A stretch of DNA of 64,000 nucleotides from Auanema rhodensis (lineage: Eukaryota > Animalia > Nematoda), in assembly GCA_964057225.1 (NCBI GenBank), contig OZ059899.1, forward strand, positions 5,022,001 to 5,086,000. The letters are read 5' to 3'. The notes under the pieces are model-generated. The model made no database searches. It had not been told where the DNA came from and saw only the letters and a program-made list of their open reading frames with translations. A program made the translations under genes and the position numbers. Positions 37,619-53,961 of this stretch are shown in pieces (position 1 is the first letter of the stretch; every line of letters starts with the position of its first letter).

Positions 37619-40600
37619 ATGTCAGATGTTCGTGTAAAGTTTGACCTAAATGGTCCTGTGACCGAAAAGGAGACGGAAGAGGTATCGCCTTAGACTATCA
37701 GTGACCTCTTTCTATGAACATTGTGATTCATGATTGTTGATTGTATAGGTTTTCCTTCCCCCTGCACCCCTTCTTGCTGGTGCTCATGTCTCTGGTCTGC
37801 CTTCATACTATGAAAAGTATCGTAGCTCCATTAATGACTCTGATGCTTTCTGGAAAACTGTTACCGCTGAGTTGTATTTTGAAGCTCTATCTGACAAAGT
37901 AAGACAATTTTGAAGACAAAGAAAATAAATGAAATTTAAAAGGGATTGGAATACAATTTCGATGCAAAGAAGGGAAAAGTCTTCTGCAAATTCATGGATG
38001 GTGCTCGTACTAATATCTCCTACAATTGCCTCGAAAGAAACCTTCAGAGAGGGTTGGGCGATCGGGTAAACTAGATAAAAAGTGATTACTGAAATTTTTG
38101 ATAAATATAGGTAGCCTACATTTGGGAAGGTAACGAGCCCTCAGATACATCAAAAATTACCTATGCCGAGCTTCATAAGCAGGTATGTCTAACTTAGTGT
38201 ACAGTATTCCTCGATAAATTAATTTTACTGTTACATCTTAGGTTGTAAATTTTTCCGCTGTTCTGCGTTCCCATGGTGTCAAGAAAGGTGATGTTGTTGC
38301 CATCTATCTTCCTATGGTACTGGAACTTGCTGTGGCTATGTTGGCATGTGCTCGAATAGGTAATATCATTGGAATAGGATTGCATGATCACAAGCTATAA
38401 TTTAGGTGCCATGCATTCCGTTGTCTTTGCCGGTTTTTCTGCTGAATCCCTCTCCGCACGTATGCTGGACGCTCAGTACGTTTTTAAAATGAATACCGCA
38501 AAAAAGGAAATTGTTTTAGTTGTCGCGTTCTGATTACTGCCGATGGCTTCTACCGTTCCACAAAATTGATAAATTTGAAGACCATTGCGGATTCCGCCGT
38601 CCAATTATGTAAAGCAGATAGTTTGAATGTTTCCTCTGTTATTGTGGTTGAGCACGTCAAGCGCATCACCGTTCCTTCTGGTGCACCTACTTTGCAGGTT
38701 AGCATGAGATCAAATTTCGAAATCTAATCATTGTGTTAAGGAGTTTGTGAAATCTGAAATTGACTTTTCTTATGAAGAAGAAATGAAGAAATTAGAAGGC
38801 GTAGATTCTCCAGTTGAGTGGATGGAAGCCGAAAGTCCTCTGTTCCTCCTCTACACTTCGTAAGTATTAAGATTAATTTTGGCGTTATGAACATTTTACA
38901 AATCTTGCGTTCTGTTACTTTTTGACCGTTTACGTTTCATTTTCAATATTTGTTTCACATGCCTATATATCTTGCCAACTCTATGTGCATATATCAAGAA
39001 AGAAATCAATTCTTTTCCCCCTCTCTGTAGCGCTTAGAGAATGAAAGCTCTGCATCGTTTCCTTTCCCAGTCGAAAACCCATAGCACTTTTTCTTCTCTG
39101 CTTCCATTTCTCCTCTTCTCACCACCATCATGACCAACAGAAGCGGCGTTTCATATTCTCTGTTTCTCTCTTTCGTTTACTCCCTTAGCTGCTTTTCTTC
39201 CACAATGGCCGAGGAGAAGCATCCCCCCAGCGAATTGTATATATCCATCTGTCAGTCTTTTTCTTATGCTTCAGCAAACAAGGAACACGTCAAGTTTTAG
39301 AAATAACAGAATAGTTCATCAAAGTTCAGAGTAATCACAGAAAAGTTTAATTTTCCCTTTTCAGCGGGTCTACGGGAAAACCAAAAGGAATACAGCATAC
39401 CACAGCTGGTTATATGACGTATAGTTATTTTACAACCAAATGTACATTTGATGCACAGCCTGAAAAGGACGTATATTGGTGCACCGCTGACTGTGGTTGG
39501 ATTACAGGACACTCGTGAGTTTTTTTAATATTCAAAATGACAAAGCCTTTTTCTCCTTTTTTAATCTCTTTTATTGTATATTCTTTTCTTCAGTTATCTC
39601 TTGTATGGTCCTTTGATGAATGGTCTGACTGGAATATGGTTTGAAGGAGTGCCAACGTACCCTACACCATCCCGTATGTGGGAAGTTACCGATAAGTATA
39701 AGGTAATGATTTCTGATATAAATGCCGAAATGTTCGCCTCACATGTCACCAGCTTAGTGAAATGCACGTGCTTTGCATGTTTTCCCACCATATACTGACT
39801 CAGTGCTGCGATGCACAATAGTTCTTATCACTATGGGGCGATGGTGTGAGCTATATTACATAATCACAAAGTTTTTTGATCTTGGATCATATTAGCGAGA
39901 ACACGTCATAAGAGAATTCGAGATTGAAAATAAATATGAATTAATTAAAATTTAATGGTTTAATTTTAGGTGAATAAGCTTTATACTTCTCCAACTGCTG
40001 TCCGTGCTCTGATGGCATTGGGTGACCAACATGTTACTAAGTAGGGATTTGTAATAACTTCCGCAAAAAATATTTTTTGAAGGTGTTCAAGAATGAGTCT
40101 TGAAATTCTTGGAACTGTAGGAGAACCTATAAACCCAGCTGCTTGGAAATGGCTGCACTCTGTTGTTGGAAACAGTCGTTGTGCTATCGTTGACACATAT
40201 TGGCAAACTGAAACAGTATGCACATTGTATGAATATAACAGTTATAATGTGAATATTCTAGGGAGGACATATGATTGTTCCACTACCTGGAGCTACTCCT
40301 ACCAAGCCTGGAGCTGCCACTTTCCCCTTCTTTGGAGTAAATCCTGTTATTCTTGATGGGGAAGGACGAGTAATCGAGGGACCTGGAGAAGGAAACCTAT
40401 GCTTCGACCGTGCATGGCCTGGAATGTGCCGAGGAGTGTTTGGAGACGAATCAAGGTAAGTGAGAGGCAACTAAACTTGGAGCTTTTCTTAATTCATTAG
40501 ATTCGTTCAAACATACTTTGCTCCTTTCAACGGTTACTACTTTACCGGAGACGGTGCTCGTCGTGATGAGGATGGATATATCTGGATCACCGGGCGTGTT

Positions 40601-41094
40601 GATGATCTCATGAATGTTTCTGGACATCTTTTATCTACTGCTGAAATTGAGAGCGCTTTAGTTGCTCACCCAAAGGTTGCTGAAGCTGCTGTCGTAGCTG
40701 CACCTCATGACATTAAAGGAAGTTATCCATATGCCTTCGTTACTATGAATACAGGAGAGCACTTGAACAAAGAGCTTGTAAGAACAAACGTTTTTTAATA
40801 GAAATTTTAAATTTCTGCTCCAGGTTTCTGAGTTGAAAACGTTTGTGCGTGGCAAAATTGGTGCTCTTGCTGTACCTGATGTTATTCAAAATGCCCCAGG
40901 TCTTCCAAAAACTCGTTCAGGAAAGGTATTATTTAAAAAAATTATATTCCAGTATTTTTCAATAAATTAAGGTGACCCGTCGTATTCTCCGCAAAATAGC
41001 CGAAGGCCAAGAAAGCGCAATTGGAGATACCACAACTTTGATCGATGAAGGCGTCATCAAACAGCTGATTTCTGGACGTGACCTTAAAGGTTAA
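37619..41094 (+). CDS. acs-19: Acetyl-CoA synthetase (ACSS2 type)
   Basis: [39 protein letters not shown]-loop [91 protein letters not shown] at 37619, TAA at 41092-41094, AATAAA at 41473. Confidence 0.95.
39736..39863 (+). ncRNA. Candidate structured intronic RNA in acs-19
   Basis: CTCACAT (39738-44) pairs with GTGTGAG (39844-50) and TAGTGA (39755-60) with TCACTA (39828-33). An alternative two-hairpin fold is followed by ACA. Confidence 0.3.
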
Positions 41095-41817
41095 ACCTCG
41101 TTTCCAGTTTAGCTCACCAGAAAATCAATTAGCAATCTTTGAATTCAAATTTTCTTCTCTTTTTTAGCATGTTCACTCACTTCTTAATTCCATAGTCCGC
41201 AACTAGTCTCTGACTGACGAGTTGCATAATTTTAGTGTGTTATTTTGTCATTCCTTGTTCGAAGAAAATTTAATCTCATTTTCTACCCTTTGAATTTAAA
41301 ATATTCTGAAGGAACCTCGTTACCCACGCGCATCTCTTATTAGATTTGTGCGTTGAAAACGTGAATCTTTCTCTAATAGTTTTACTTTTTTTTTGTACCA
41401 TTTTTATTTATTTGGAAAAGATGAAGATAAAGAAGAATAAGAAGATACATGTATAATTTTTATAATGACGGCAATAAATATGTATTGAAGAATTCATTCT
41501 ATTCTATTTTTGGTTCAATTTTCATGAAAATAGTGCCAATTTGATCTGGCAGCATGGAGCCGGATGCAGTGATGTTTTCTGTTTAGTCATCGTCGTACGA
41601 CGTTACCAGATAGTATCTTTGCATCTGTCGTCCTCAAATTTCCTTTAAAGATTGTACTTGTCATTATCATTAGATCAGACACGATATTTAAGAAATATCG
41701 TCATAGTTTATGTTATCTTAATTATTATTTTTAAAACTATAACATCACTCATATATAGTAAGTGTAACGGAACTAACTCGATCTATTTTTACTTTGTTTT
41801 ACTTCTTTCATAGGTCA

Positions 41818-44800
41818 ATGATGTATATCAGTGAAGTATGTTTACTTCAACAACTTATGCGGAAAAAGCAGTTTTCTATGGAGGACAAAGCAGCCTTAAT
41901 ATGGTAAAAAGATGTTATTTGTTTTACAATTTGTATCGTTTTCCTCGTATGCCTGTGCTTGACTGGTGTATGTTCTAATGTTTATGGGAAGCTATTTTTC
42001 GTTGTTGATTGAATATATATATTTTCAATATGAAAATCAACAATTATCTTTTTGTAGTTAAAATCTATTTAACTATAGAAAGATTATTAAATAAAAAAAA
42101 GAAAAAGAAAACAAACGTATAATATAAGAAATATGAATGTAAGTAGTAAGAAATATACATTTTTCAAGATTATGTTGCCTTGACACCTACATGTGTATCT
42201 CGAATGAATTTGTGTGTGTTAGTAGTTGCATAATGACGACTTCATTACTATTTCACTTCAACTTATGTCTCTTGTTTGCTCAACATGTTTTCTCACTTCT
42301 TGCTATTCTTTTTCATTTTCGCAGATCTCTCTTCTTTCTATTTTGCATTTTCATGTAGGTTTTACTATGCCTCTTACTTGCATGTTATCTCTTCACTCCC
42401 ATTTTCGCCTCTTTATTTGTGATATGAGCAGCATGGATTGTATATCGGAAAGTGAATTGTCGGAGAAAAAAACAGAAAAAGCTTAAAAAGAAAAAAAATT
42501 TAATTGAAAATGAAAACAAGAACCACATGAGGAAAATATGCGCATCAATCAAATCAACTTAAGAAATCTGATAAAGGATAACATGAAACGAAGTAGAAAA
42601 CAGAATATTCGTATATTCAACGAATCTATTTATCTCTTTTCGATGTTGAAATGTGATGCTAAATGGAAACAATCTCTCAGCATCATCTGATATATAATAA
42701 CTGAATATCTATGTATATATTATATATTTTAAAGATTTGCCATATATTTCCAAAACTTTCATATTTGATCAAAAATAATTTATCTGTTACTAATGGGGTG
42801 ATTGCCCGTCTGAATTGTTCTATAGATTAGTATTTGAGAGAAAAAGCCAAAAAAAGAACGTAAATACGGAAGAGAGAAATGTGATCAATGATTTATAGAT
42901 TTTAAATTTTATTTGTATGTTATCTCGAAATCTGATCAGATCAGAATCGTATGATTTAACAAACAAAATATCAAGCCTAATCAGGAGATGTTGTTACACC
43001 ATTTGCACCTTGATGTCATATACTAAGTTCATGAACGTTTAAACATGAACTTTGTTTTCGGGGGTATTTTCTTTTTTTTTTTGGAATAGAAGATAAGCCG
43101 ATCAACATCATAAGAATATTTGTAACATAACAGATAGAACATAAAGGCTTTATCTCATCAATTACTCATTTGACTTAATGTTTTATATCTTTGAATCTAT
43201 AGAAGTTCTTAAAGCTTTAAATTTCAAATGGTATTGGCATAGAACGATAACGTTATGAACACGCGATTGCAAATATTTCAAATTGGCTGATGCTATGAAA
43301 TCAGCCGATATTTATGTTTACTATTGCCATCATCACCTCACTTTTTGTCATATAAAAGCATATATTACAATACAAATTAATGACTAAATAAGGGATTAAA
43401 TATAATAATTTAATAATAATTATAGGGAAGGAAATTATTATGATGGAATGTGTCATGATTATGCTGAATTATCATGGAAAACAATATCTATTGTTGTTGC
43501 AAAAACAACTAAATTACTTAATAAATATTGTCAACAGGTATTTTATAAATATAACTATATATATATAACTATATATATATAATTATTTTAAATCATAAAA
43601 TATAAATTTAAGTTTGAAACATTTCCTTTTTTCTTTTTTTTTTCGTTTGTGGTACAATCATTCATACAGTATAAAAGAATATTTTCTAAGAATATGCACG
43701 TAAGAGCTAATGTTTGTTGATCTAATTGAACTTATTTTTGTTCAAATAATGTCAACTTGTATACGTGATAAAGATTATTTTAGAAAATGAACATAAAATA
43801 TAAATAATTTGATTATTTTCTTTTTATAAATATAAAAAGATTAATCTTTTATTTCATTAAATTTAAAAAAGAAAAGAAATTTTATGTTTATTCATCATCA
43901 TCGTCATCATCTTCTTTGTTATCTTTGATGTTTCAGAAGAAGAATTAAGCATTTCAGTTTATAGTTGAGAACAAAATTTTGTTGTTTATGATATAACATT
44001 GAATTGAAATTTAAAAAAAAAGAAAAGCTTTTCAAATAATTTTTACAAAGAAGAAAGTTTTTTGTGTTTTTAACAAAAAAAAACGGATAGAATTGTAAGG
44101 GAAATGAAATAGAAGATAGAACAAAATCTAAAATAAACAAAAAAAAACATAAAATGATTATAGTATTCAACTAATTATATTATATAATTCTATATAATTT
44201 AACTTTTTCGTTTATATACAATTATTTTCTATTTTCTTCTTTTCTTTGTTGAAATTTGAAATCTTCATAGATGCAATAGAAGATGAAAGGGGAGTTGAAA
44301 CAATTATTTGAAGCTATTAGTATAAATAATTTAGTAAATATTTAATAATTTAAATATATTAACCTTATTATTATTATTATATTTTTTTATAAAATATAAT
44401 TTTTAAAATAATTTTTCAACAATACCCTTACTCATTTTGGTTTAATATACCTCTGTATAACATGGGGTTGCTACACTGTTTTTCAAATTTATTGTATTGT
44501 TTTGTGAAATTTGAAACATTTTTTCAAAAAAAATGTGAAAATGAAATATATATTTTAGAAAAACTTTTTTTTTTCGATGATATTGACTTACAAAATAGAC
44601 AATATCTTCAAACGCCCACAAAAAACATTTAAAGTAAATTCATTGATTTAAAGATTTATATTATATAGATTAGAGTATATAATATACATTTATAAGTTAA
44701 TTTATTTATTAAATAAAAATAAATAAAACTTTATTAATTTAAAATAAAAAGATTTTATTTTTTTTTAATTTCGTGATCTTCTTCTTCTTCCTTCTTAACA

Positions 44801-47800
44801 TAATCAATGTTATAATTAAATTTTTATTTAATAAACAAAAATAAATAATAATAATAAAATATTATTTTATATATTATATACTATATGGATATATATATAT
44901 AAAAAATTTGAATTATTTTGTTGAAATATTTGAATTACGTAGAAATGAATCAAAACTGTTCCAAAATGGATTTTGTGCAGCATCACTATGCAAAAATATA
45001 ATTGAAATATGGGAAATCACATAAATAAATATGAAAAATAATTTTTTTCTTTATTACAAAAAGAAAAAAAATATAAAAACAATATATTTTACATATACAA
45101 ATATTTTTACAAAAATATTTTTATTTATTTTTTATTTAGGGGTTTAATATATTTTTATTTTATTTTCAGAATGATTATATATTATTATTATTACCAAATA
45201 TAGTTCAATTACCTTTGATTATTCTAGCTGCTGATTGTCTTCAACTAATTCCTATTTTGGTGGTAAATATGAAAAACATTTCTACTTTTCATCTAATTTT
45301 CAATTAATCTTCAACAGAATCCATCAGATATACGAATGGAAAAGACTTTAAATGAAATATTTTCAACGAAAAAAATTAAATTAATTATAACATTGGATGG
45401 ATATTGGCAAGCAGATCATTTACATCGAACTAAAGAAAATTTGGATCAAATTCTACAGAAAACAGTAAACATTTTCTTTTTTTTTCTTGTATTTCCACAT
45501 TTCTCTTTCTTGCTTTTTTCTCTAAATTTTTTTTTAAGAAATATGAGATTAATCATGTGTTAGTGATTCGCCATTGTGCCCCAAATGATGGTATACCAAC
45601 TCCAGATGTGGAATATCCTGGACGTCGTCCATCCTATCAGTTAAAGGTCTGGAATGAAAAAAATGTTATTTGATTTATTCACATGAAATGCATATATAAA
45701 GATGATAGAACAAAAAAAAAGATGAGGATTAATGATGAAAGGAAAAACTTTTCCAGAATTTTGAAAAATTTTTATTTTCAGTTTTCTTTAATGGATGGTC
45801 GTGATGAGGAGTGGAGTCAACTATTTCGGCAGATTTCTGGTTCAAACGAAGAAGTTTTAGATTTTCTCAAAAACTTGAATGGTTTTAATGGAATTGATAA
45901 GCTGAATTGTTCTTCCGAAGCTCAAAGCATTAATAGAATTTCAATAATATTACCAGTATGGTATGAGTTTAAAGATATATTTTTCTTTAAAATATTTGAT
46001 ATAACTATATATTTTTATTCAAATTATTCTTTAATATTCTTTTATTTCTTTATATTAGTTAAATTTGGAACAAAGATTTTGAATGTGTATGTATTGACTC
46101 AATGCCATTACGACATTATGATTGAAAATTGGAAAAAATTTTTCCGGAAATGGTATTGCTATTCTTTTCCATGAAATTTGATCGAAAATGATTTTGTTAG
46201 GAAAACCTATGGCCTTTTCTTCATCCACATTCACCTATTTTCACACAAATTCTTATTTCGAATGAAAAAAATCCGGGTAGGGAAGGGTGGGTTTGAGGAA
46301 GACCTAACATCATCAAAGTCTCGCTCTGATCTTTAGTTCTAAAAAGAAAAATTGGGTCTAAAAGCGGAAAAAGCTGATATACTTAGCCGTGCTGGGCAGC
46401 TAAGTCTTCCCAGGCCGGCCATGTTCGGCTTTTCGTGTCTGGTTGTGAGTCTATATATTGTCTGATGGCGATTGCTATTCCTACATATATTTCTTGGGTA
46501 TATGTGCTGCAAGCCATTCTAGCTTCTCTGACTCACTCAGCGAACACCAAATAATGTTCGTTCAAGCAGCCAATTCGTTACCCATCCAGACATGCACATT
46601 CTCCCTCAACATATCCCTCTATCTCCCCTATCCTTTCTTATCCTTTCTTCGTCTCTCCCCTCTGACACACACACACTCTCTCTCTTTCTTTCTCTGCTCT
46701 TTTTTTATATTTTCTTCCATTTCCCTCTCTCTCTCACTCTCTCTCTCTCTATCCCCTTTTTCCCTCTTTCTCTTTTCAAATTATTTTTTTCCCTTCAAGA
46801 TCTTCTGTTCCCTCTTTTACTATCTTCGTTTCTCTTTGCTTTCTCTGCATCACATTTTCACATCGGTCTCTTTCTTCTTCTATTTCTCTGCAAAATTCCG
46901 AATAAAACCCAAGCAATTTTAAACCATTGGTCATCATTTCCTTCATCTGCCTATCCCTTTTCCTTCTTCATCTTCTTCGTCTCTTCTCTCCTATCCTCCC
47001 CTCTCCTATTTTTCCCTCTATGTTCCTGTTCTGGAGCTCCTTTGAACATGACGTCATTTCAACAGGAATCGACAAATTTTTGAGCTAAGTTTTTGTCAAC
47101 AAACTAGAACATGCTCAGAATATCTATAAGTGAGCTCAGAAACACAAAGGAAGGAAGACAAGTGATTAAAAACATATTTAAAGAAAAAATTGTTAATTTA
47201 ACATAAAAAATACAAATTATTTATTTATTTAAAATATTTATATTTTTATATTTCAGGTATAAAACAAGTTTTAAACTACAATTTATAACAATTAATGATT
47301 TATTTCAAGCTTTAGGTTAATTTTTAAAATTTTAAAATTTAAAAAAAATTAAAATTATAGAAAGAATTACCAAACGTATCAAAGTTACAAATGAATCAAT
47401 AATATTGAATCTTGGACATCCAGCTGAATCATTTTATAATTTTATAACTTTACTATTTCCATGGTATTCAGGAAATGCTCTTGTTCAGGTTATAATTCAA
47501 TTTCAAAAAATATTTTTTTGAATGAGAGATCTGAGAATCCTTTTTCCCTTCTTTACCTCATCTTATGCCTAGAATATATGATGAAAGATTTGGAGAGAAG
47601 ATAGAGAAAAACAAGGAGAGAGAGAGAGAGAGAGTAAGTGAAATGAAGAAAAAAACACGATACAGTAGAAGTATAGAAAATGAATGTTAAAGAGATAAAA
47701 AGAAATGCCGATAGAAGAAACGATGAAAATGCTATAAATTCAGTCGTCTGAAAGATAAACTAGAGACCTCCCTGTTAGAAAAGTAACTTGATGCTGCTGT

Positions 47801-50800
47801 CGTTAGACGACGTTAACTGCTTTGTCGTCGTGTCTTAAGAGACTTTGAATAAGATGTTTACGAACGTGAGACGTCGTTTATATCACCTTGAATATGTCAA
47901 CGATGACAATGATGAGTTTATCGGATATTGAATGGTATCGTTGAAAGAATAACTTGACTTTATTTCCAAAAATTATAAATTCAGACTAAAAGATAAAAAA
48001 AACAAAAAATCTTTATGTTGTAACTCAAATATGATCATTTATCTAAAACAAAAGTAATTAATCTTATTGCCAACATCAACAAAAACTTCGCAAAATATTC
48101 AACTAAATCATCTAATCTGTATTGTATAGCTGCTGTCATCTCTTCTTTTGAAACCTCAACGACGACATACTACTCTTTGCTCGTTTTCTCCAAACTCTTT
48201 GATATTTGCCGTCGTCTAGAATACATTTTGCGTCTTTCGCTTACTCCTATCTAATCGTCGTTAATCGAACTCCTGATTCATAGCCAACATACACACAGGC
48301 ACAAAGCCATACAGACACATACATATACACACATACACGCGCGTACTCACATAGAACGATGAATTCTGACAGTCGTTGACGGATGACAAGGACAAGAGAA
48401 AACGTAACGAGGGAAATAAAAGATAAAGAGAGCATTCCATACCATATAGAATAAATTTTAGCATTAAATATACATTAATGAGTCATTTTTAATCCTTATA
48501 AATGACTTTTTTGAATTAAAGTTCAAGCGAACGATTATTGGTCTTATTGTTCAACTTCATTCAGTCTCTTCTTTGCACTTCTTTCTTTTTTTTCCTGAAT
48601 TATCCATTTAATTACTGTCGTATTGTAGACATTTAATTTGTTTCAAGTCATTTTCCGGGTGAATGCAACTGTGTTCGGCTTCGTGGTTATTTCGAGGTTG
48701 AGCTCATACACACCTCATCGGATCCCTTGGAACGACCACACACACAAAACGATGACAATCTCTCTTTTGCCAGATATGTCTGAATACTGCAGGCCAAATA
48801 TAGATGTGAGAGAACTAAAGAGAGAAAGATCAAGGGAATAGAAGAGATAGAGAGATAGCGAGCAGCAAGACCAGAATAGTCGGAACGTACGACATGTGGT
48901 GAATGACATTCTGAAGGCCAACAACCCGTGTGTTGGGGGCCATCTACTCTAGGTGTCGCTCTTCTGTTTTTGCCTTGTTCGGCCGTCTCTCATCTACTTC
49001 TACTCGAGAAGAAGATGATGATGATGACGATTGAGATGTCGTTGCCCTTTGTCAACGTTGCCGTCAGAATTTCAATTACAAGGCTTTACTTTTCGATAAT
49101 GTGTTTAAGATACAGTCAAAGCTCATGGACGATAAGAATAAAAAAAAGTTTTTGTTTCGTATTATCAGATCAGAATGAAGAAACAAAGACAATTTCCCTC
49201 TTACTGTCTTCAATCGCTTTTTCATCTATGAATTCATATGTTCCAACGGCCTCTCCCTTCGCATCAACTGGCTTGTTTCTTTTTTCTGTTTGGTCCCATC
49301 AATATCAGAGATAATCGGGAAAACTCATTGAAATTGAACCAACATTAAGAAAAACATTTATTCCTCTATCTCATTCTTTTTCTATTCAGTCTGAATTCTC
49401 AAGTTGAGAACAACTAAAGAATGAGTGACAAAGACCAGCTTCATGACTGACCCTATATTCTTCCCCCTCCTCCTCCCCCACTCTATCTCTTCTTGCAGCC
49501 TACAATCTTTCTGCTTCTGAAGGAACACATTTGATCTGAGTATAAGTACATATTATGAAATTGTATTGAGTTATGTGTAAAACAGATGAAGAGAATATAA
49601 AAATGTCTGATGAAGATGAAGAAAAAGAAGATGGAAGAGTAGAAAAAGAGTAGGATGAGGAAGAAAGAAAAAATAGGAAGGGAGAAGCGGTAAAGGTTGA
49701 GTTATTGAACAACGACAAAGCAAAAAGAATACAAGATGGTGCCAACCAATAGTAAAGAAAGAGAGTGAGTGTGGAGAAACAAAGAATGATGAAAGGAATT
49801 GTAAAAGAATCAGGAATATAGATGACTGACGAGACTTTTGAGAGAATAGTACAACAATTTATGAAAATACTTTTATATCCCACAGGAATAACATAAACTT
49901 TTGCTTGTTCAATCAGTTAGTTTCCAAAGCAAAAAAACTTGATGACATCATTTCCGCTGTTTCTGTCATATCACAAACCATCCCTGATATGTCATATATA
50001 TCTTATATTTAATTATTTATGATAGATTATACGAATATTTAAGATGACAATCTATCAGAAACGGAAAAATAAAATTGTACTTTCTCAGGCGTTTGTCGTT
50101 AAGTACAAATTGTCTCTAGAAGGACAATGATGTGGTCAATTGACCACATAGTTTATAAAAAATTTTAAATATTATGAATTGAAATTGAAATTAAAAGAGA
50201 CATAGACATAGATATATTGAGATAGAGAGAAATGAGAAAGAGACATAAATATACATAGATCTTACACTTTTCCATCTCTCCTTCTTTTCAACACTTTGTT
50301 CTTTCTTTTTTCTTGTGTCCCATTTTACCAATAACAGCTTCATCATAAGCTGTATGTCGTTTCCCTCTCTCAAAATTTGGGATGAAAGATTTCTGAGTAG
50401 TTAATCCAAAGCTAGGTGTGGCAGGAGAATGAGGAAGATAAATGTACTACAATGAATTGGTATTTTTATTGAAACATTAAATAATTGTAGGAGCTATAGA
50501 TACCTCATACATCTCTTTTTTTCGTTTTTCATTTTTTTTCAGTTCGAAGGGCATTTCTCGTTCCCAGATCCTTCACGTATCAGTCATATCATTCAGAAAT
50601 ATCATGTATGTTACAAGTTGCAATGACTACCTTTGGCATTTTGTTTATCAAAGTTCATGTTATAGGTTGACATTTTACTTCTGTCACATGATATATCATT
50701 GGATCCAAACTATCTTAGCATAGTTCCAACTCCTACACTCCAGTATATACTCGTCGGGAATGCATCAAATCACATCGAGCATGGTGTTGATGTTAAGCAA

Positions 50801-50917
50801 GATGCTGAAGACAGGGATGATTTTTCTGCGAACGATGACGTGTATCAAATGCAACTCCAAGTGCAGATTCTTCAATCAGTTTATGATAATACCAATATTG
50901 AAACGATTAATATGTAA
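41818..50917 (+). CDS. Divergent, truncated acetyl-CoA-synthetase-like pseudoenzyme (10 exons, about 408 aa)
   Basis: Exons 41818-41903, 43426-43537, 45170-45262, 45318-45464, 45539-45646, 45782-45960, 47257-47315, 47361-47488, 50543-50605, 50666-50917 splice in frame (1227 nt). Colinear with ACS-19: AALIWEGN~[22 protein letters not shown]~[24 protein letters not shown]~[31 protein letters not shown]~[21 protein letters not shown]. The P-loop and C-terminal motifs are missing. Confidence 0.8.
46364..46436. ncRNA. Candidate small hairpin RNA (pre-miRNA-like or Pol III type) inside the ACS-like gene intron
   Basis: GC-rich imperfect fold-back of about 70 nt (GAAAAAGCTGA..GCCGTGCTGGG / CCCAGGCCGGC..TCGGCTTTTC) in an AT-rich intron. 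On the minus strand a TATATA box (46457-46452) precedes it and it ends in T5. Confidence 0.4.
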
Positions 50918-51108
50918 ACTTAGCCATAATTCGCTTGTATATGAAATGAAAACAATACTTAATTCTTAATATTTATATATTTATATATATTAATATATAT
51001 AAAGCAAAAACAACTTAAGATTACAAACAAGTTACGAGTGGGATAGGTAGGTATGGGTCGGTTGATCTAAGGATTCAGAAGTATAATAAATGAGGGAAAG
51101 GAAAGGAA

Positions 51109-51154
51109 GGGGGGGGGGGGGTAAAAAAGGAATCGGGACGGGTCTGGGAATGGG
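51109..51154 (+). other. G13 tract plus G-quadruplex motif
   Basis: G13 at 51109-51121 and GGG-AC-GGG-TCT-GGG-AAT-GGG at 51135-51154, between the convergent ACS-like and ncl-1 3' ends. Confidence 0.75.
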
Positions 51155-53961
51155 AAAGGCGGATTCGGGACAAGGAAAAGAACAGGCGGCAGAATAGGGC
51201 TAGGGGAATAATGAGTCTTTGAAACTTCCTATACAGAGTTTTGGGCCAATTTTATAATAACGAATTTAATAGAAAAAAAACATATTTAAGAAAAAAATAA
51301 AAAAGGGACACTTTAACTGACAATGAAAGACCGGGGAAAGTGTTGAGGGCCGTAAGCCGAGACTGGTTGAAATTTCGAATGACCTCATTTTTCTCGAGAA
51401 AAAAATGAAGTCGACTTTGGATTTCCCTAGATTAGTTCTCAAAAAATCACAGGACTTCACAAAAGACGAGAAGAAGGTCAGCACAGCGCAAAGTTCCGTA
51501 GTTCATATGAAAGGCAAAAAAAAAACAAAAAGATGTGGCACGATTCTAGTAAATATTCTCATAAACTGAACAGTTCATGATCAAGAAATTTGACAAAAAA
51601 AAATTAAGTAAAAAATTGAAAAAAGCTAAAAAGATTGAAAAAAGAATAAAATCATTCATAACAAAGTTTTTGAAATGATCTTGTTCCAAAAACTTCCAGC
51701 TTCTTGAACTTTTGATGTTTTTTTGAAAACTAATTCAGTTTCTTTAAAGAATCACAAATGACGACAGTATAAAGCGAAAAAGAGAGGAAATAAATATGAA
51801 GGTTTTTCAATTTCAGCTCACTCTTTTTCACTTTCTAACTGTTACACTATGTTGGAATATTATTTTTTTCATTATGAATTGCCACATCTTTACTGCAACG
51901 AACACTATGTAAATATTTCAAATGGGTTACAATGTTTCTCTTTGCTAATTATGAATATGAATGCAACTTTCATATTTTATATCCGAAAACGTTTGTCGCA
52001 GTTGCGTTTTCATCCAGCATAATACGTCATAGATGGAGAGAACAAACACAGCCGTCACGCTCTGAAGTCCAACTAGTTGCCACATCTTATTCAATGTGGC
52101 GTAGTCAGTGACGTAAACTTGATATCATGACGAAGGTGAATGAATATGACCAGAGGTAATAACATCTCTGATGCAATGTAGACGTCAGCGATGAAGCTGA
52201 GGATAAGAGTTGATTGCATTACAAACTACAGAAGAGTAACAGGAACGTTTTGGTTCTTATTCTTTTTTTTCAACAACAAATGTAACCGAATAATTCCACA
52301 CCATATATATTCATATTAAATACATATATAAGTATATATATTCATAAATAAATATATATAAATATATATAGTACATCATAATTGAAATATGCTAAACGAA
52401 CTACAAAAGCTTATTTAATTACGAAAAAAGAAAGAGAAACATAGAAAGAAACTGGATATGACTACGGAATATTGCCACAGCTTACACCGAGAGGGAGAGT
52501 ACGCAGACACACTCACTAGTCATATTACGAACTTTTACCACTGGCCGGCAGTCGCACACACTAACAAATGAAAACCAACAGAGAGATGCAACAAGATGTG
52601 GGGACGCTCAACGTCCCACGACTAAGCACCCAAGCGCGCCTAACTTCGTATACATTATTACAAACAACGAGAGGACAACGTTAAAATAAATATGTTGTAT
52701 ATGTGCATTTTACAAGTGCTTAACAGAGAATGGGATGGTGCCCGCGATAACAAAAACGGAAAGGGTAAAACGTATATATATCGACATTTTTTGAATGGGG
52801 TAAGACTTTAACCGGGGGAGGGGGCTAATTTTCTTTTTTTTGCATATTGGCGGGTGTAGGTATAGCGGTGATGGTATGATGGTCGTGTGTTTAAGAGCTG
52901 TTGGATAATGACGGGGAAGTGGAGGCGAAAAAAGAGCTTTGGGGCTGGGAAGATAACTAACACGATGAGGGGTATAGGATGGCTTACGAGGCTTCGACCA
53001 ACACCAGCAAGCTATTCAAGTGCAGAAAAATCACTGAACTTCCTGCTGGCATGCAAAAGAAGCTGGATGTTTTGTAAAGGGGAATGCGCAGAATTCCCAA
53101 ACACACAAGACATTATAAGGGTTCAAAAACGAAACTCGACATTATCAAGACGAGAATGCTATTGTGGGTCGTAGAAAGATGGAGAAACAAAGCGAGAGCT
53201 GCTCTCTGCCAAATTAAACAAAAAAAGAAAAGAATAAATACTCAAAGTGGCAGAGCAAGAGACATGTCGCCAGCGACAGCTCATCAGCTCAAATAAAACG
53301 CTCATTAGTCGTTCGATTAGGTGCAATTCGCGAAATTACAAGAAAAATGAAAGGGTAATAAAACAGTTACAATAGCAATCCAGGCTTTCAAATATATCGA
53401 ATATACATAGGCAAAGAAACCCTAAGAACATGACCCTAATGGTCCTACCACACGCACAAGAGTTAAAAATTTGAATAGAAAGAGCTAATAACCAACCAAG
53501 AAACTGTAACAAACTGGGGGCAAACAACAGAAGGGGTGAACACAACAAGGCGCAGCCTGGCGCGTCTTCTAAATGAATGGAGAGCCGCCGGTAGTCGCCG
53601 TAAAAAACGCTACACGGCGCCGGTCCAGCCGGCGTGCTAGCAGCTACTGGGGCCACGAGCGAGCAAGAAAAGCTGCAGAGGCACAACAAATAGATAAGGA
53701 AGTTAACCAGTATAACAGACGACATGTAATCATCCTAGAAGGGAGGATTTTTGAAGAACTGAAAAGGTAAGAGCACCCATCCATTCTACAAAAATACAAC
53801 CTTAGCATGAAAAGGATGATACTAACTAGTAGTAATAGCAAAAAAAATTGAATGTAGATGTAATTGTTGATGCAGAAAAAATGATGTAAAGTAGTAGTAG
53901 TAGCAGTAGCGCGGTAGACAACGGCGACGGATCGGATCCGGAAAAGGCTTACGTTAGCAGC

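Follow-up and report, generated by a model that had tools for sequence, protein, structure and literature searches.

Within the ANL family, N-terminal parts of acetyl-CoA synthetase (ACS) and its C-terminal domain together form the CoA and AMP sites. The AMP-forming enzymes of this type include ACS-19 of Caenorhabditis elegans, human ACSS2 and bacterial Acs (TIGR02188; PF16177, PF00501 and PF13193). The ten ANL core motifs, A1-A10, and their roles have been summarized (PMC3438747), and in worms ACS connects acetate with histone acetylation and with pathways of lifespan (PMC8068152). Our analysis concerned a 64-kb window of the nematode Auanema rhodensis genome (64,000 nucleotides, nt; positions 5,022,001 to 5,086,000 of contig OZ059899.1, assembly GCA_964057225.1), in which a complete acs-19-like gene (37619-41094, + strand; hereafter acs or the parent) is followed on the same strand by a ten-exon open frame (41818-50917; hereafter the copy, with exons E1'-E10'). 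By sequence comparison, the copy is established as a tandem same-strand derivative of the neighboring acs gene. With moderate confidence, we consider it to be a kept, or only recently lost, gene: a lineage-restricted, fast-evolving, non-catalytic remnant.

The copy is similar to ACS in the order of its blocks, which follows approximately residues 95-430 of the neighboring enzyme, and in three common introns. It differs from ACS in that no family model matches it and that ACAS_N, motifs A3, A5, A7, A8 and A10 and the C-terminal domain are absent; residue identity reaches only approximately 30-43% in the best-matching blocks, with none detectable outside them. As in pseudoenzymes such as pseudokinases and the antizyme inhibitor, an enzyme paralog retains an open frame and a coding signature without catalytic residues, and the copy lies next to the active gene. 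In being an enzyme homolog without catalytic residues it agrees with a pseudoenzyme, a term that a literature search did not show among the matches listed. However, accepted pseudoenzymes keep their fold, are conserved and are expressed, whereas about 40% of the fold is deleted in the copy, which is known here from sequence alone. With unprocessed pseudogenes it shares the tandem arrangement, truncation at both ends, very high divergence and AT-drifted synonymous sites; unlike them, it can be modeled without a stop or frameshift, has retained or gained splice sites, and displays strong codon periodicity.

An earlier note on this DNA had described a same-strand frame of ten exons without internal stops, beginning about 720 nt past the acs-19 stop. 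Such a frame was found, with its start ATG 724 nt past the acs stop and a TAA at 50915-50917, and comprises 409 codons; all nine introns are GT-AG with compatible phases, and the strings EGN, YQLK/FS, LPVW/YKTS and QKYH/VD (slashes mark introns) are present as described there. E10' and the locus as a whole are single-copy in the genome.

Descent from acs was assessed by a Smith-Waterman (SW) scan of each acs exon against all open segments of 41100-51300, with block-shuffled DNA as the null; this and all other searches were carried out exon by exon, exon nucleotides being pooled for base composition only. The strongest match was that of acs exon 10, with a score of 48 at 50543-50602 (0 of 2000 shuffles, p <= 5e-4). 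It corresponds to E9' (50543-50605), which has a TTTTCAG acceptor and carries the block FEG..P.PSR..KY with 9 of 21 residues identical (z 11.5). Acs exon 7 scored 41 at 45378-45458 (region-wide p = 0.024) within E4' (45318-45464; z 5.5), where LIITLDG is homologous to the VLITADG region of the parent. Acs exon 5 scored 36 at 45167-45229 (region-wide p = 0.037), matching E3' (45170-45262; TTTTCAG acceptor), a homolog of its GDxxxxxLP...LA region (SW 35-36, z 3.1). These three matches lie on the same strand and in gene order, and their scores are higher than the best obtained in any of 16 control chunks of real window sequence.

In the exon-by-exon comparison, five of the ten model exons matched the expected acs exon best (E1' exon 3, E3' exon 5, E4' and E5' exon 7, E9' exon 10), with z up to 11.5; the binomial chance of these pairings is estimated at approximately 1e-3. 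E1' (41818-41903) resembles the end of acs exon 3 (CL..L...D.A.IW), its best acs exon by z (2.2), and the INHVLVIRH... segment of E5' (45539-45646) the second half of exon 7 (z 2.1). With a profile built from 71 bacterial Acs proteins, the best-match positions of five exons were collinear, which occurred in 0 of 1000 shuffles. When all open segments were scored with this profile, the paralog exons could not be told from background by score (<= 0.1 bits for the model exons), and only the positions were informative. Local alignments were also combined in a free collinear chain score, which was dropped because its null was too noisy (z 2.1). In a language-model look-up, the clusters closest to E4' all consisted of AMP-binding fragments, though the score was weak (0.80).

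Introns add to this comparison. As the earlier note had stated, three are common to both genes in position and phase (0, 2, 0), among them the one ending E5' (phase 0, weak donor GTCTGG) and the KYK/V intron of acs, whose counterpart in the copy, KYH/V after E9', is identical in residue position and phase. Over the shared span three introns are common, six copy-specific and five parent-specific, which suggests an old duplication. Judged from these alignments, descent from acs is statistically supported for E1', E3', E4', E5' and E9', in agreement with the tandem duplication proposed in the earlier note. E2' (43426-43537) contains a W-EGN...YAEL segment in which the acs exon 4 motif is recognizable by eye, the similarity not being significant. 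E6' (45782-45960; TTTTCAG acceptor) has the position of acs exon 8 and, like it, ends in phase 2. E7' (47257-47315; TTTCAG acceptor, weak donor GTTAAT) occupies the expected place of the P-loop exon, and neither a GSTGKPKG motif nor similarity to acs exons was found in it. E8' (47361-47488) shows no detectable similarity to acs exons 9-10 and ends in a weak donor (GTTATA) followed by a 3054-nt intron. The last exon, E10' (50666-50917; 83 codons and TAA), has the position of acs exons 11-12, encodes an acidic tail and is followed by an AATAAA at 51085-51090.

The catalytic motifs are missing from the copy. The P-loop motif A3, (T/S)(S/G)G(S/T)TGxPKG, was not found in it, and the junction of E6' and E7' reads LPVW-YKTSFKLQ. 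The frame ends at 50917, before the position of motif A5, and neither A5 (WQTETG) nor A7 (Y-x-TGD), A8 (GRxDD) or A10 (PKTRSGK, with the catalytic lysine) occurs in the copy. No second instance of the P-loop, WQTETG, TGD, GRxDD or PKTRSGK was found in the 64-kb window, and the bacterial ACS profile, which gives 60-134 bits on acs exons 9 and 12-14, gave <= 1.5 bits elsewhere on both strands of it. Given this absence throughout the window, adenylation is excluded for the product as modeled, and the copy, on its predicted sequence, cannot be an enzyme. About 95 residues would be missing from the N-terminus of the product, along with the final portion of its N-terminal domain and all of the C-terminal domain. 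The loss of the catalytic motifs and of the C-terminal subdomain claimed in the earlier note is thereby borne out, and the missed exons restoring the P-loop or C-terminal domain, for which it had advised a check, were not found in the window by the ACS profile. Its statement that the P-loop is replaced by LPVWYKTSFKLQ holds as to the absent motif; the replacement is a positional assignment only, made across an unverified 1.3-kb intron between two exons, E6' and E7', that have no similarity to acs. Inside that intron, at 46197-46259 (+), there is a possible decayed relic of a P-loop exon (LGKP...T..Y..T.SYF, then a stop). It lies approximately 240 nt past the E6' donor, where the P-loop exon is expected, out of frame with E6', and reaches a stop after 21 codons; its score against acs exon 9 (SW 34) was not above chance region-wide (p 0.31), and a hand count revealed no coding periodicity. 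An alternative exon at 46201-46276, joining E6' to E9', was rejected, as its GC content by codon position, also counted by hand, runs the wrong way.

Codon periodicity and acceptor placement provide tests that are independent of homology. The GC contents of the first, second and third codon positions (GC1, GC2 and GC3) are 0.45, 0.29 and 0.22 in the copy, 0.55, 0.43 and 0.36 in the parent, and 0.34, 0.31 and 0.34 in random stop-free segments of the region. The difference GC1-GC3 is 0.235, versus 0.002 +/- 0.045 under the null (maximum 0.151 in 5000 length-matched draws; z 5.2). It is positive in ten exons out of ten, including E2' (+0.30), E7' (+0.26) and E8' (+0.26), and mostly negative in shifted frames. 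Third positions are at intron-like AT content and first positions are not; therefore, non-synonymous sites have been protected. By calculation, neutral decay to 17-20% GC with GC3 falling from 0.36 to 0.22 predicts a GC1 of about 0.25-0.27, and the observed 0.45 is approximately 7 standard errors above this expectation. The consensus acceptor TTTCAG occurs in the region six times on the + strand, four of these at exon starts, and once on the - strand; the longer TTTTCAG is found on the + strand three times, each time exactly at an exon start and twice at introns that the parent lacks. Of the usual marks of a pseudogene, neither frame disruption nor lost splice sites nor flat codon positions were found, though openness was one of the grounds on which the frame was selected. 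Codon periodicity together with acceptor placement argue against a long-dead pseudogene.

The reading that we favor is thus that of an old unprocessed tandem duplicate of the single acs gene. Its 5' end (about 95 codons) and all that follows from core motif A5 on would have disappeared, and its P-loop region would have been rewritten. Even so, until recently at least, it would have been kept as a spliced coding gene of ten exons and 409 codons under relaxed constraint. A product is presumably made, and any action of it would be non-catalytic, exerted via the remaining ACS N-terminal domain, with no ATP binding by a P-loop, no acetyl-AMP formation and no thioester synthesis. The copy may be transcribed together with, or just behind, the acs gene, because its ATG lies 4 nt past a strong acceptor (TTTCATAG, a possible trans-splice site), approximately 340 nt downstream of an AATAAA (41473-41478, +) that is the likely poly(A) signal of acs. 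A stronger version, in which the product would be an expressed, conserved and co-transcribed non-catalytic partner binding the synthetase or its regulators (the acetyltransferase/sirtuin system acting on the catalytic lysine), the two genes forming a linked enzyme-pseudoenzyme pair that tunes nucleocytosolic acetyl-CoA, seems to us very unlikely. The related suggestion of the earlier note, a CoA/acyl-ligand sensor or a regulator of ACS-19, found nothing in the sequence in its favor, and the product would be without the parts that jointly form the CoA and AMP sites. Its claim that the copy is kept under selection as a pseudoenzyme fared better in one respect, as the coding signature is one that a neutrally decayed copy should lose; in the other, both exon searches for relatives came back blank.

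Several observations weigh against the favored reading, and many of them speak at the same time for an unprocessed pseudogene, that is, a dead tandem duplicate the pieces of which can by luck be joined into an open frame, with no useful translation and perhaps some remaining transcription. Exon limits were picked with knowledge of the homology and of the need for an open frame, so that the absence of internal stops is in part built into the model. The same picture would be expected of a gene inactivated only recently, and a product truncated to two-thirds of the ANL N-terminal domain may fail to fold. Four introns of the copy measure 1.3-3.1 kb, compared with about 45 nt in the parent, and three donors are weak (GTCTGG, GTTAAT and GTTATA), the latter a point for the pseudogene as well, along with the loss of both ends, the AT-drifted codon usage (GC3 0.22) and the possible out-of-frame P-loop relic in intron 6'. 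Likewise, five exons (E2', E6', E7', E8' and E10') have no detectable similarity to acs exons in the exon-by-exon comparison, and the divergence is so extreme that no exon is matched by a family model: at E <= 10, Pfam PF00501 matched none of the open segments that hold an exon, NCBIfam returned nothing for nine exons, and Pfam and NCBIfam searches of the exons or their enclosing open frames yielded nothing relevant. Relatives were not found either, whether by phmmer with E6' as the query (1.84 billion representative proteins) or by a word-index search with E10', the length filter of which is blind to a 400-residue ortholog; an old duplication makes this lack of relatives more puzzling, unless evolution of the gene is rapid. 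On the other side, neutral drift down to 25-45% residue identity should have brought many indels and erased the contrast between codon positions, whereas GC1-GC3 is 5 standard deviations above random open frames and positive in every exon; consensus acceptors stand exactly at exon starts, even at introns that are new relative to the parent, and every homology block can be read through without skipping a stop or frameshift. On balance, we regard the pseudogene as a serious possibility, short of probable.

Two further explanations were considered. A real gene with missed exons that restore the P-loop and the C-terminal domain would be a second active ligase. This is suggested by the unverified state of E7', E8' and the long introns and by the GKP-containing stretch at 46197-46259; however, that stretch is not in frame, runs into a stop after 21 codons and has no coding periodicity, TIGR02188 finds no further exon nearby, and the ACS profile remains at the background level cited above everywhere outside the parent, which makes a second ligase highly improbable. 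Nor do we give much more than token credence to a chance assembly, in which an ACS-like gene was pieced together from the open frames and GT-AG pairs of AT-rich intergenic DNA. Most exon-level scores are indeed within noise, a Fisher combination over the 16 acs exons reaches only about 0.06, and the free chain score has a z of only 2.1. Against this stand the exon 10 match, never equaled in 2000 shuffles, the collinear matches of exons 7 and 5 above all real controls, the KY(K or H)/V intron at an identical position and phase, the codon periodicity, which is independent of homology (z 5.2), and the strand-specific excess of acceptors. A small remainder of probability is assigned to none of the explanations considered.

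If the copy is kept as a gene, a linked, dead and shortened paralog of this sort would be a derivative of the adenylate-forming fold of a new type, and would offer a way to study how ACS is regulated. If it is a slowly dying duplicate, it would be an ordinary by-product of tandem duplication, and its value would lie in showing, as a worked case, that codon periodicity and the placement of acceptors can tell a diverged gene from a pseudogene where homology searches fail.

The phmmer search of E6' gave two matches, both to bacterial repeat proteins on a short repeated motif, which were rejected as relatives. Residues 19-53 of E6' (45836-45940) resemble the sequence SDEEV..FL..NGF.G.DKL, repeated about seven times in these proteins (P0001, with subtilase and Ntox8 domains, and P0002; approximately 1100 residues each). 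The E-value of 3.5e-10 arises from summed repeats, and the match is taken as a coincidence. A PDB sequence search with E4' gave no match, and the only one obtained with E9', a chance resemblance to a short motif of a complex I subunit, was unhelpful.

When the long introns of the copy were compared as DNA with the worm's own genome, the only matches were short, simple and AT-rich; neither a transposon nor a second copy was found, and Rfam and tandem-repeat scans yielded nothing relevant. Intron 2' (1.6 kb) contains two TTTCAG sites, at 43937 and 43958 (+), that the model leaves unused; they could point to a micro-exon that is alternative or was missed. A CT-rich low-complexity block (46500-47100, GC skew -0.69) in intron 6' is open in all three + frames over 150-180 codons and has no family match. 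The 3-kb intron 8' harbors a 135-codon open frame on the + strand (48907-49311), with no Pfam match and with DNA unique in the genome, and a 127-codon open reading frame on the - strand (49500-49883); these could be a nested gene or nothing.

The upstream acs gene consists of 16 exons with 15 of 15 introns GT-AG, and its frame, read from the DNA and checked by script, has 683 codons (2052 nt with the stop) and is of the AMP-forming type. It carries all catalytic motifs, including the P-loop and PKTRSGK, and its exons 3-16 are each matched in order by the bacterial ACS profile (5-134 bits). In a six-frame TIGR02188 search of the genome (181 Mb, 112 contigs), ACS exons were found solely at this gene, with two weak matches to other AMP-binding genes on other contigs. 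Because ACS exons are confined to it, acs is, as far as this search of the assembly goes, the only acetyl-CoA synthetase gene of A. rhodensis. One of its 15 donors is also GTT. Parent introns are mostly about 45 nt long, a size that, like the TTTCAG-type acceptors, is in keeping with a roundworm; intron 8 (38860-39364), at 505 nt and 38% GC, stands apart from the 42-46 nt of 12 of the 14 others, and longer introns of 59, 67, 79 and 267 nt are listed besides it. The intron at this position in the copy is likewise long (1.3 kb).

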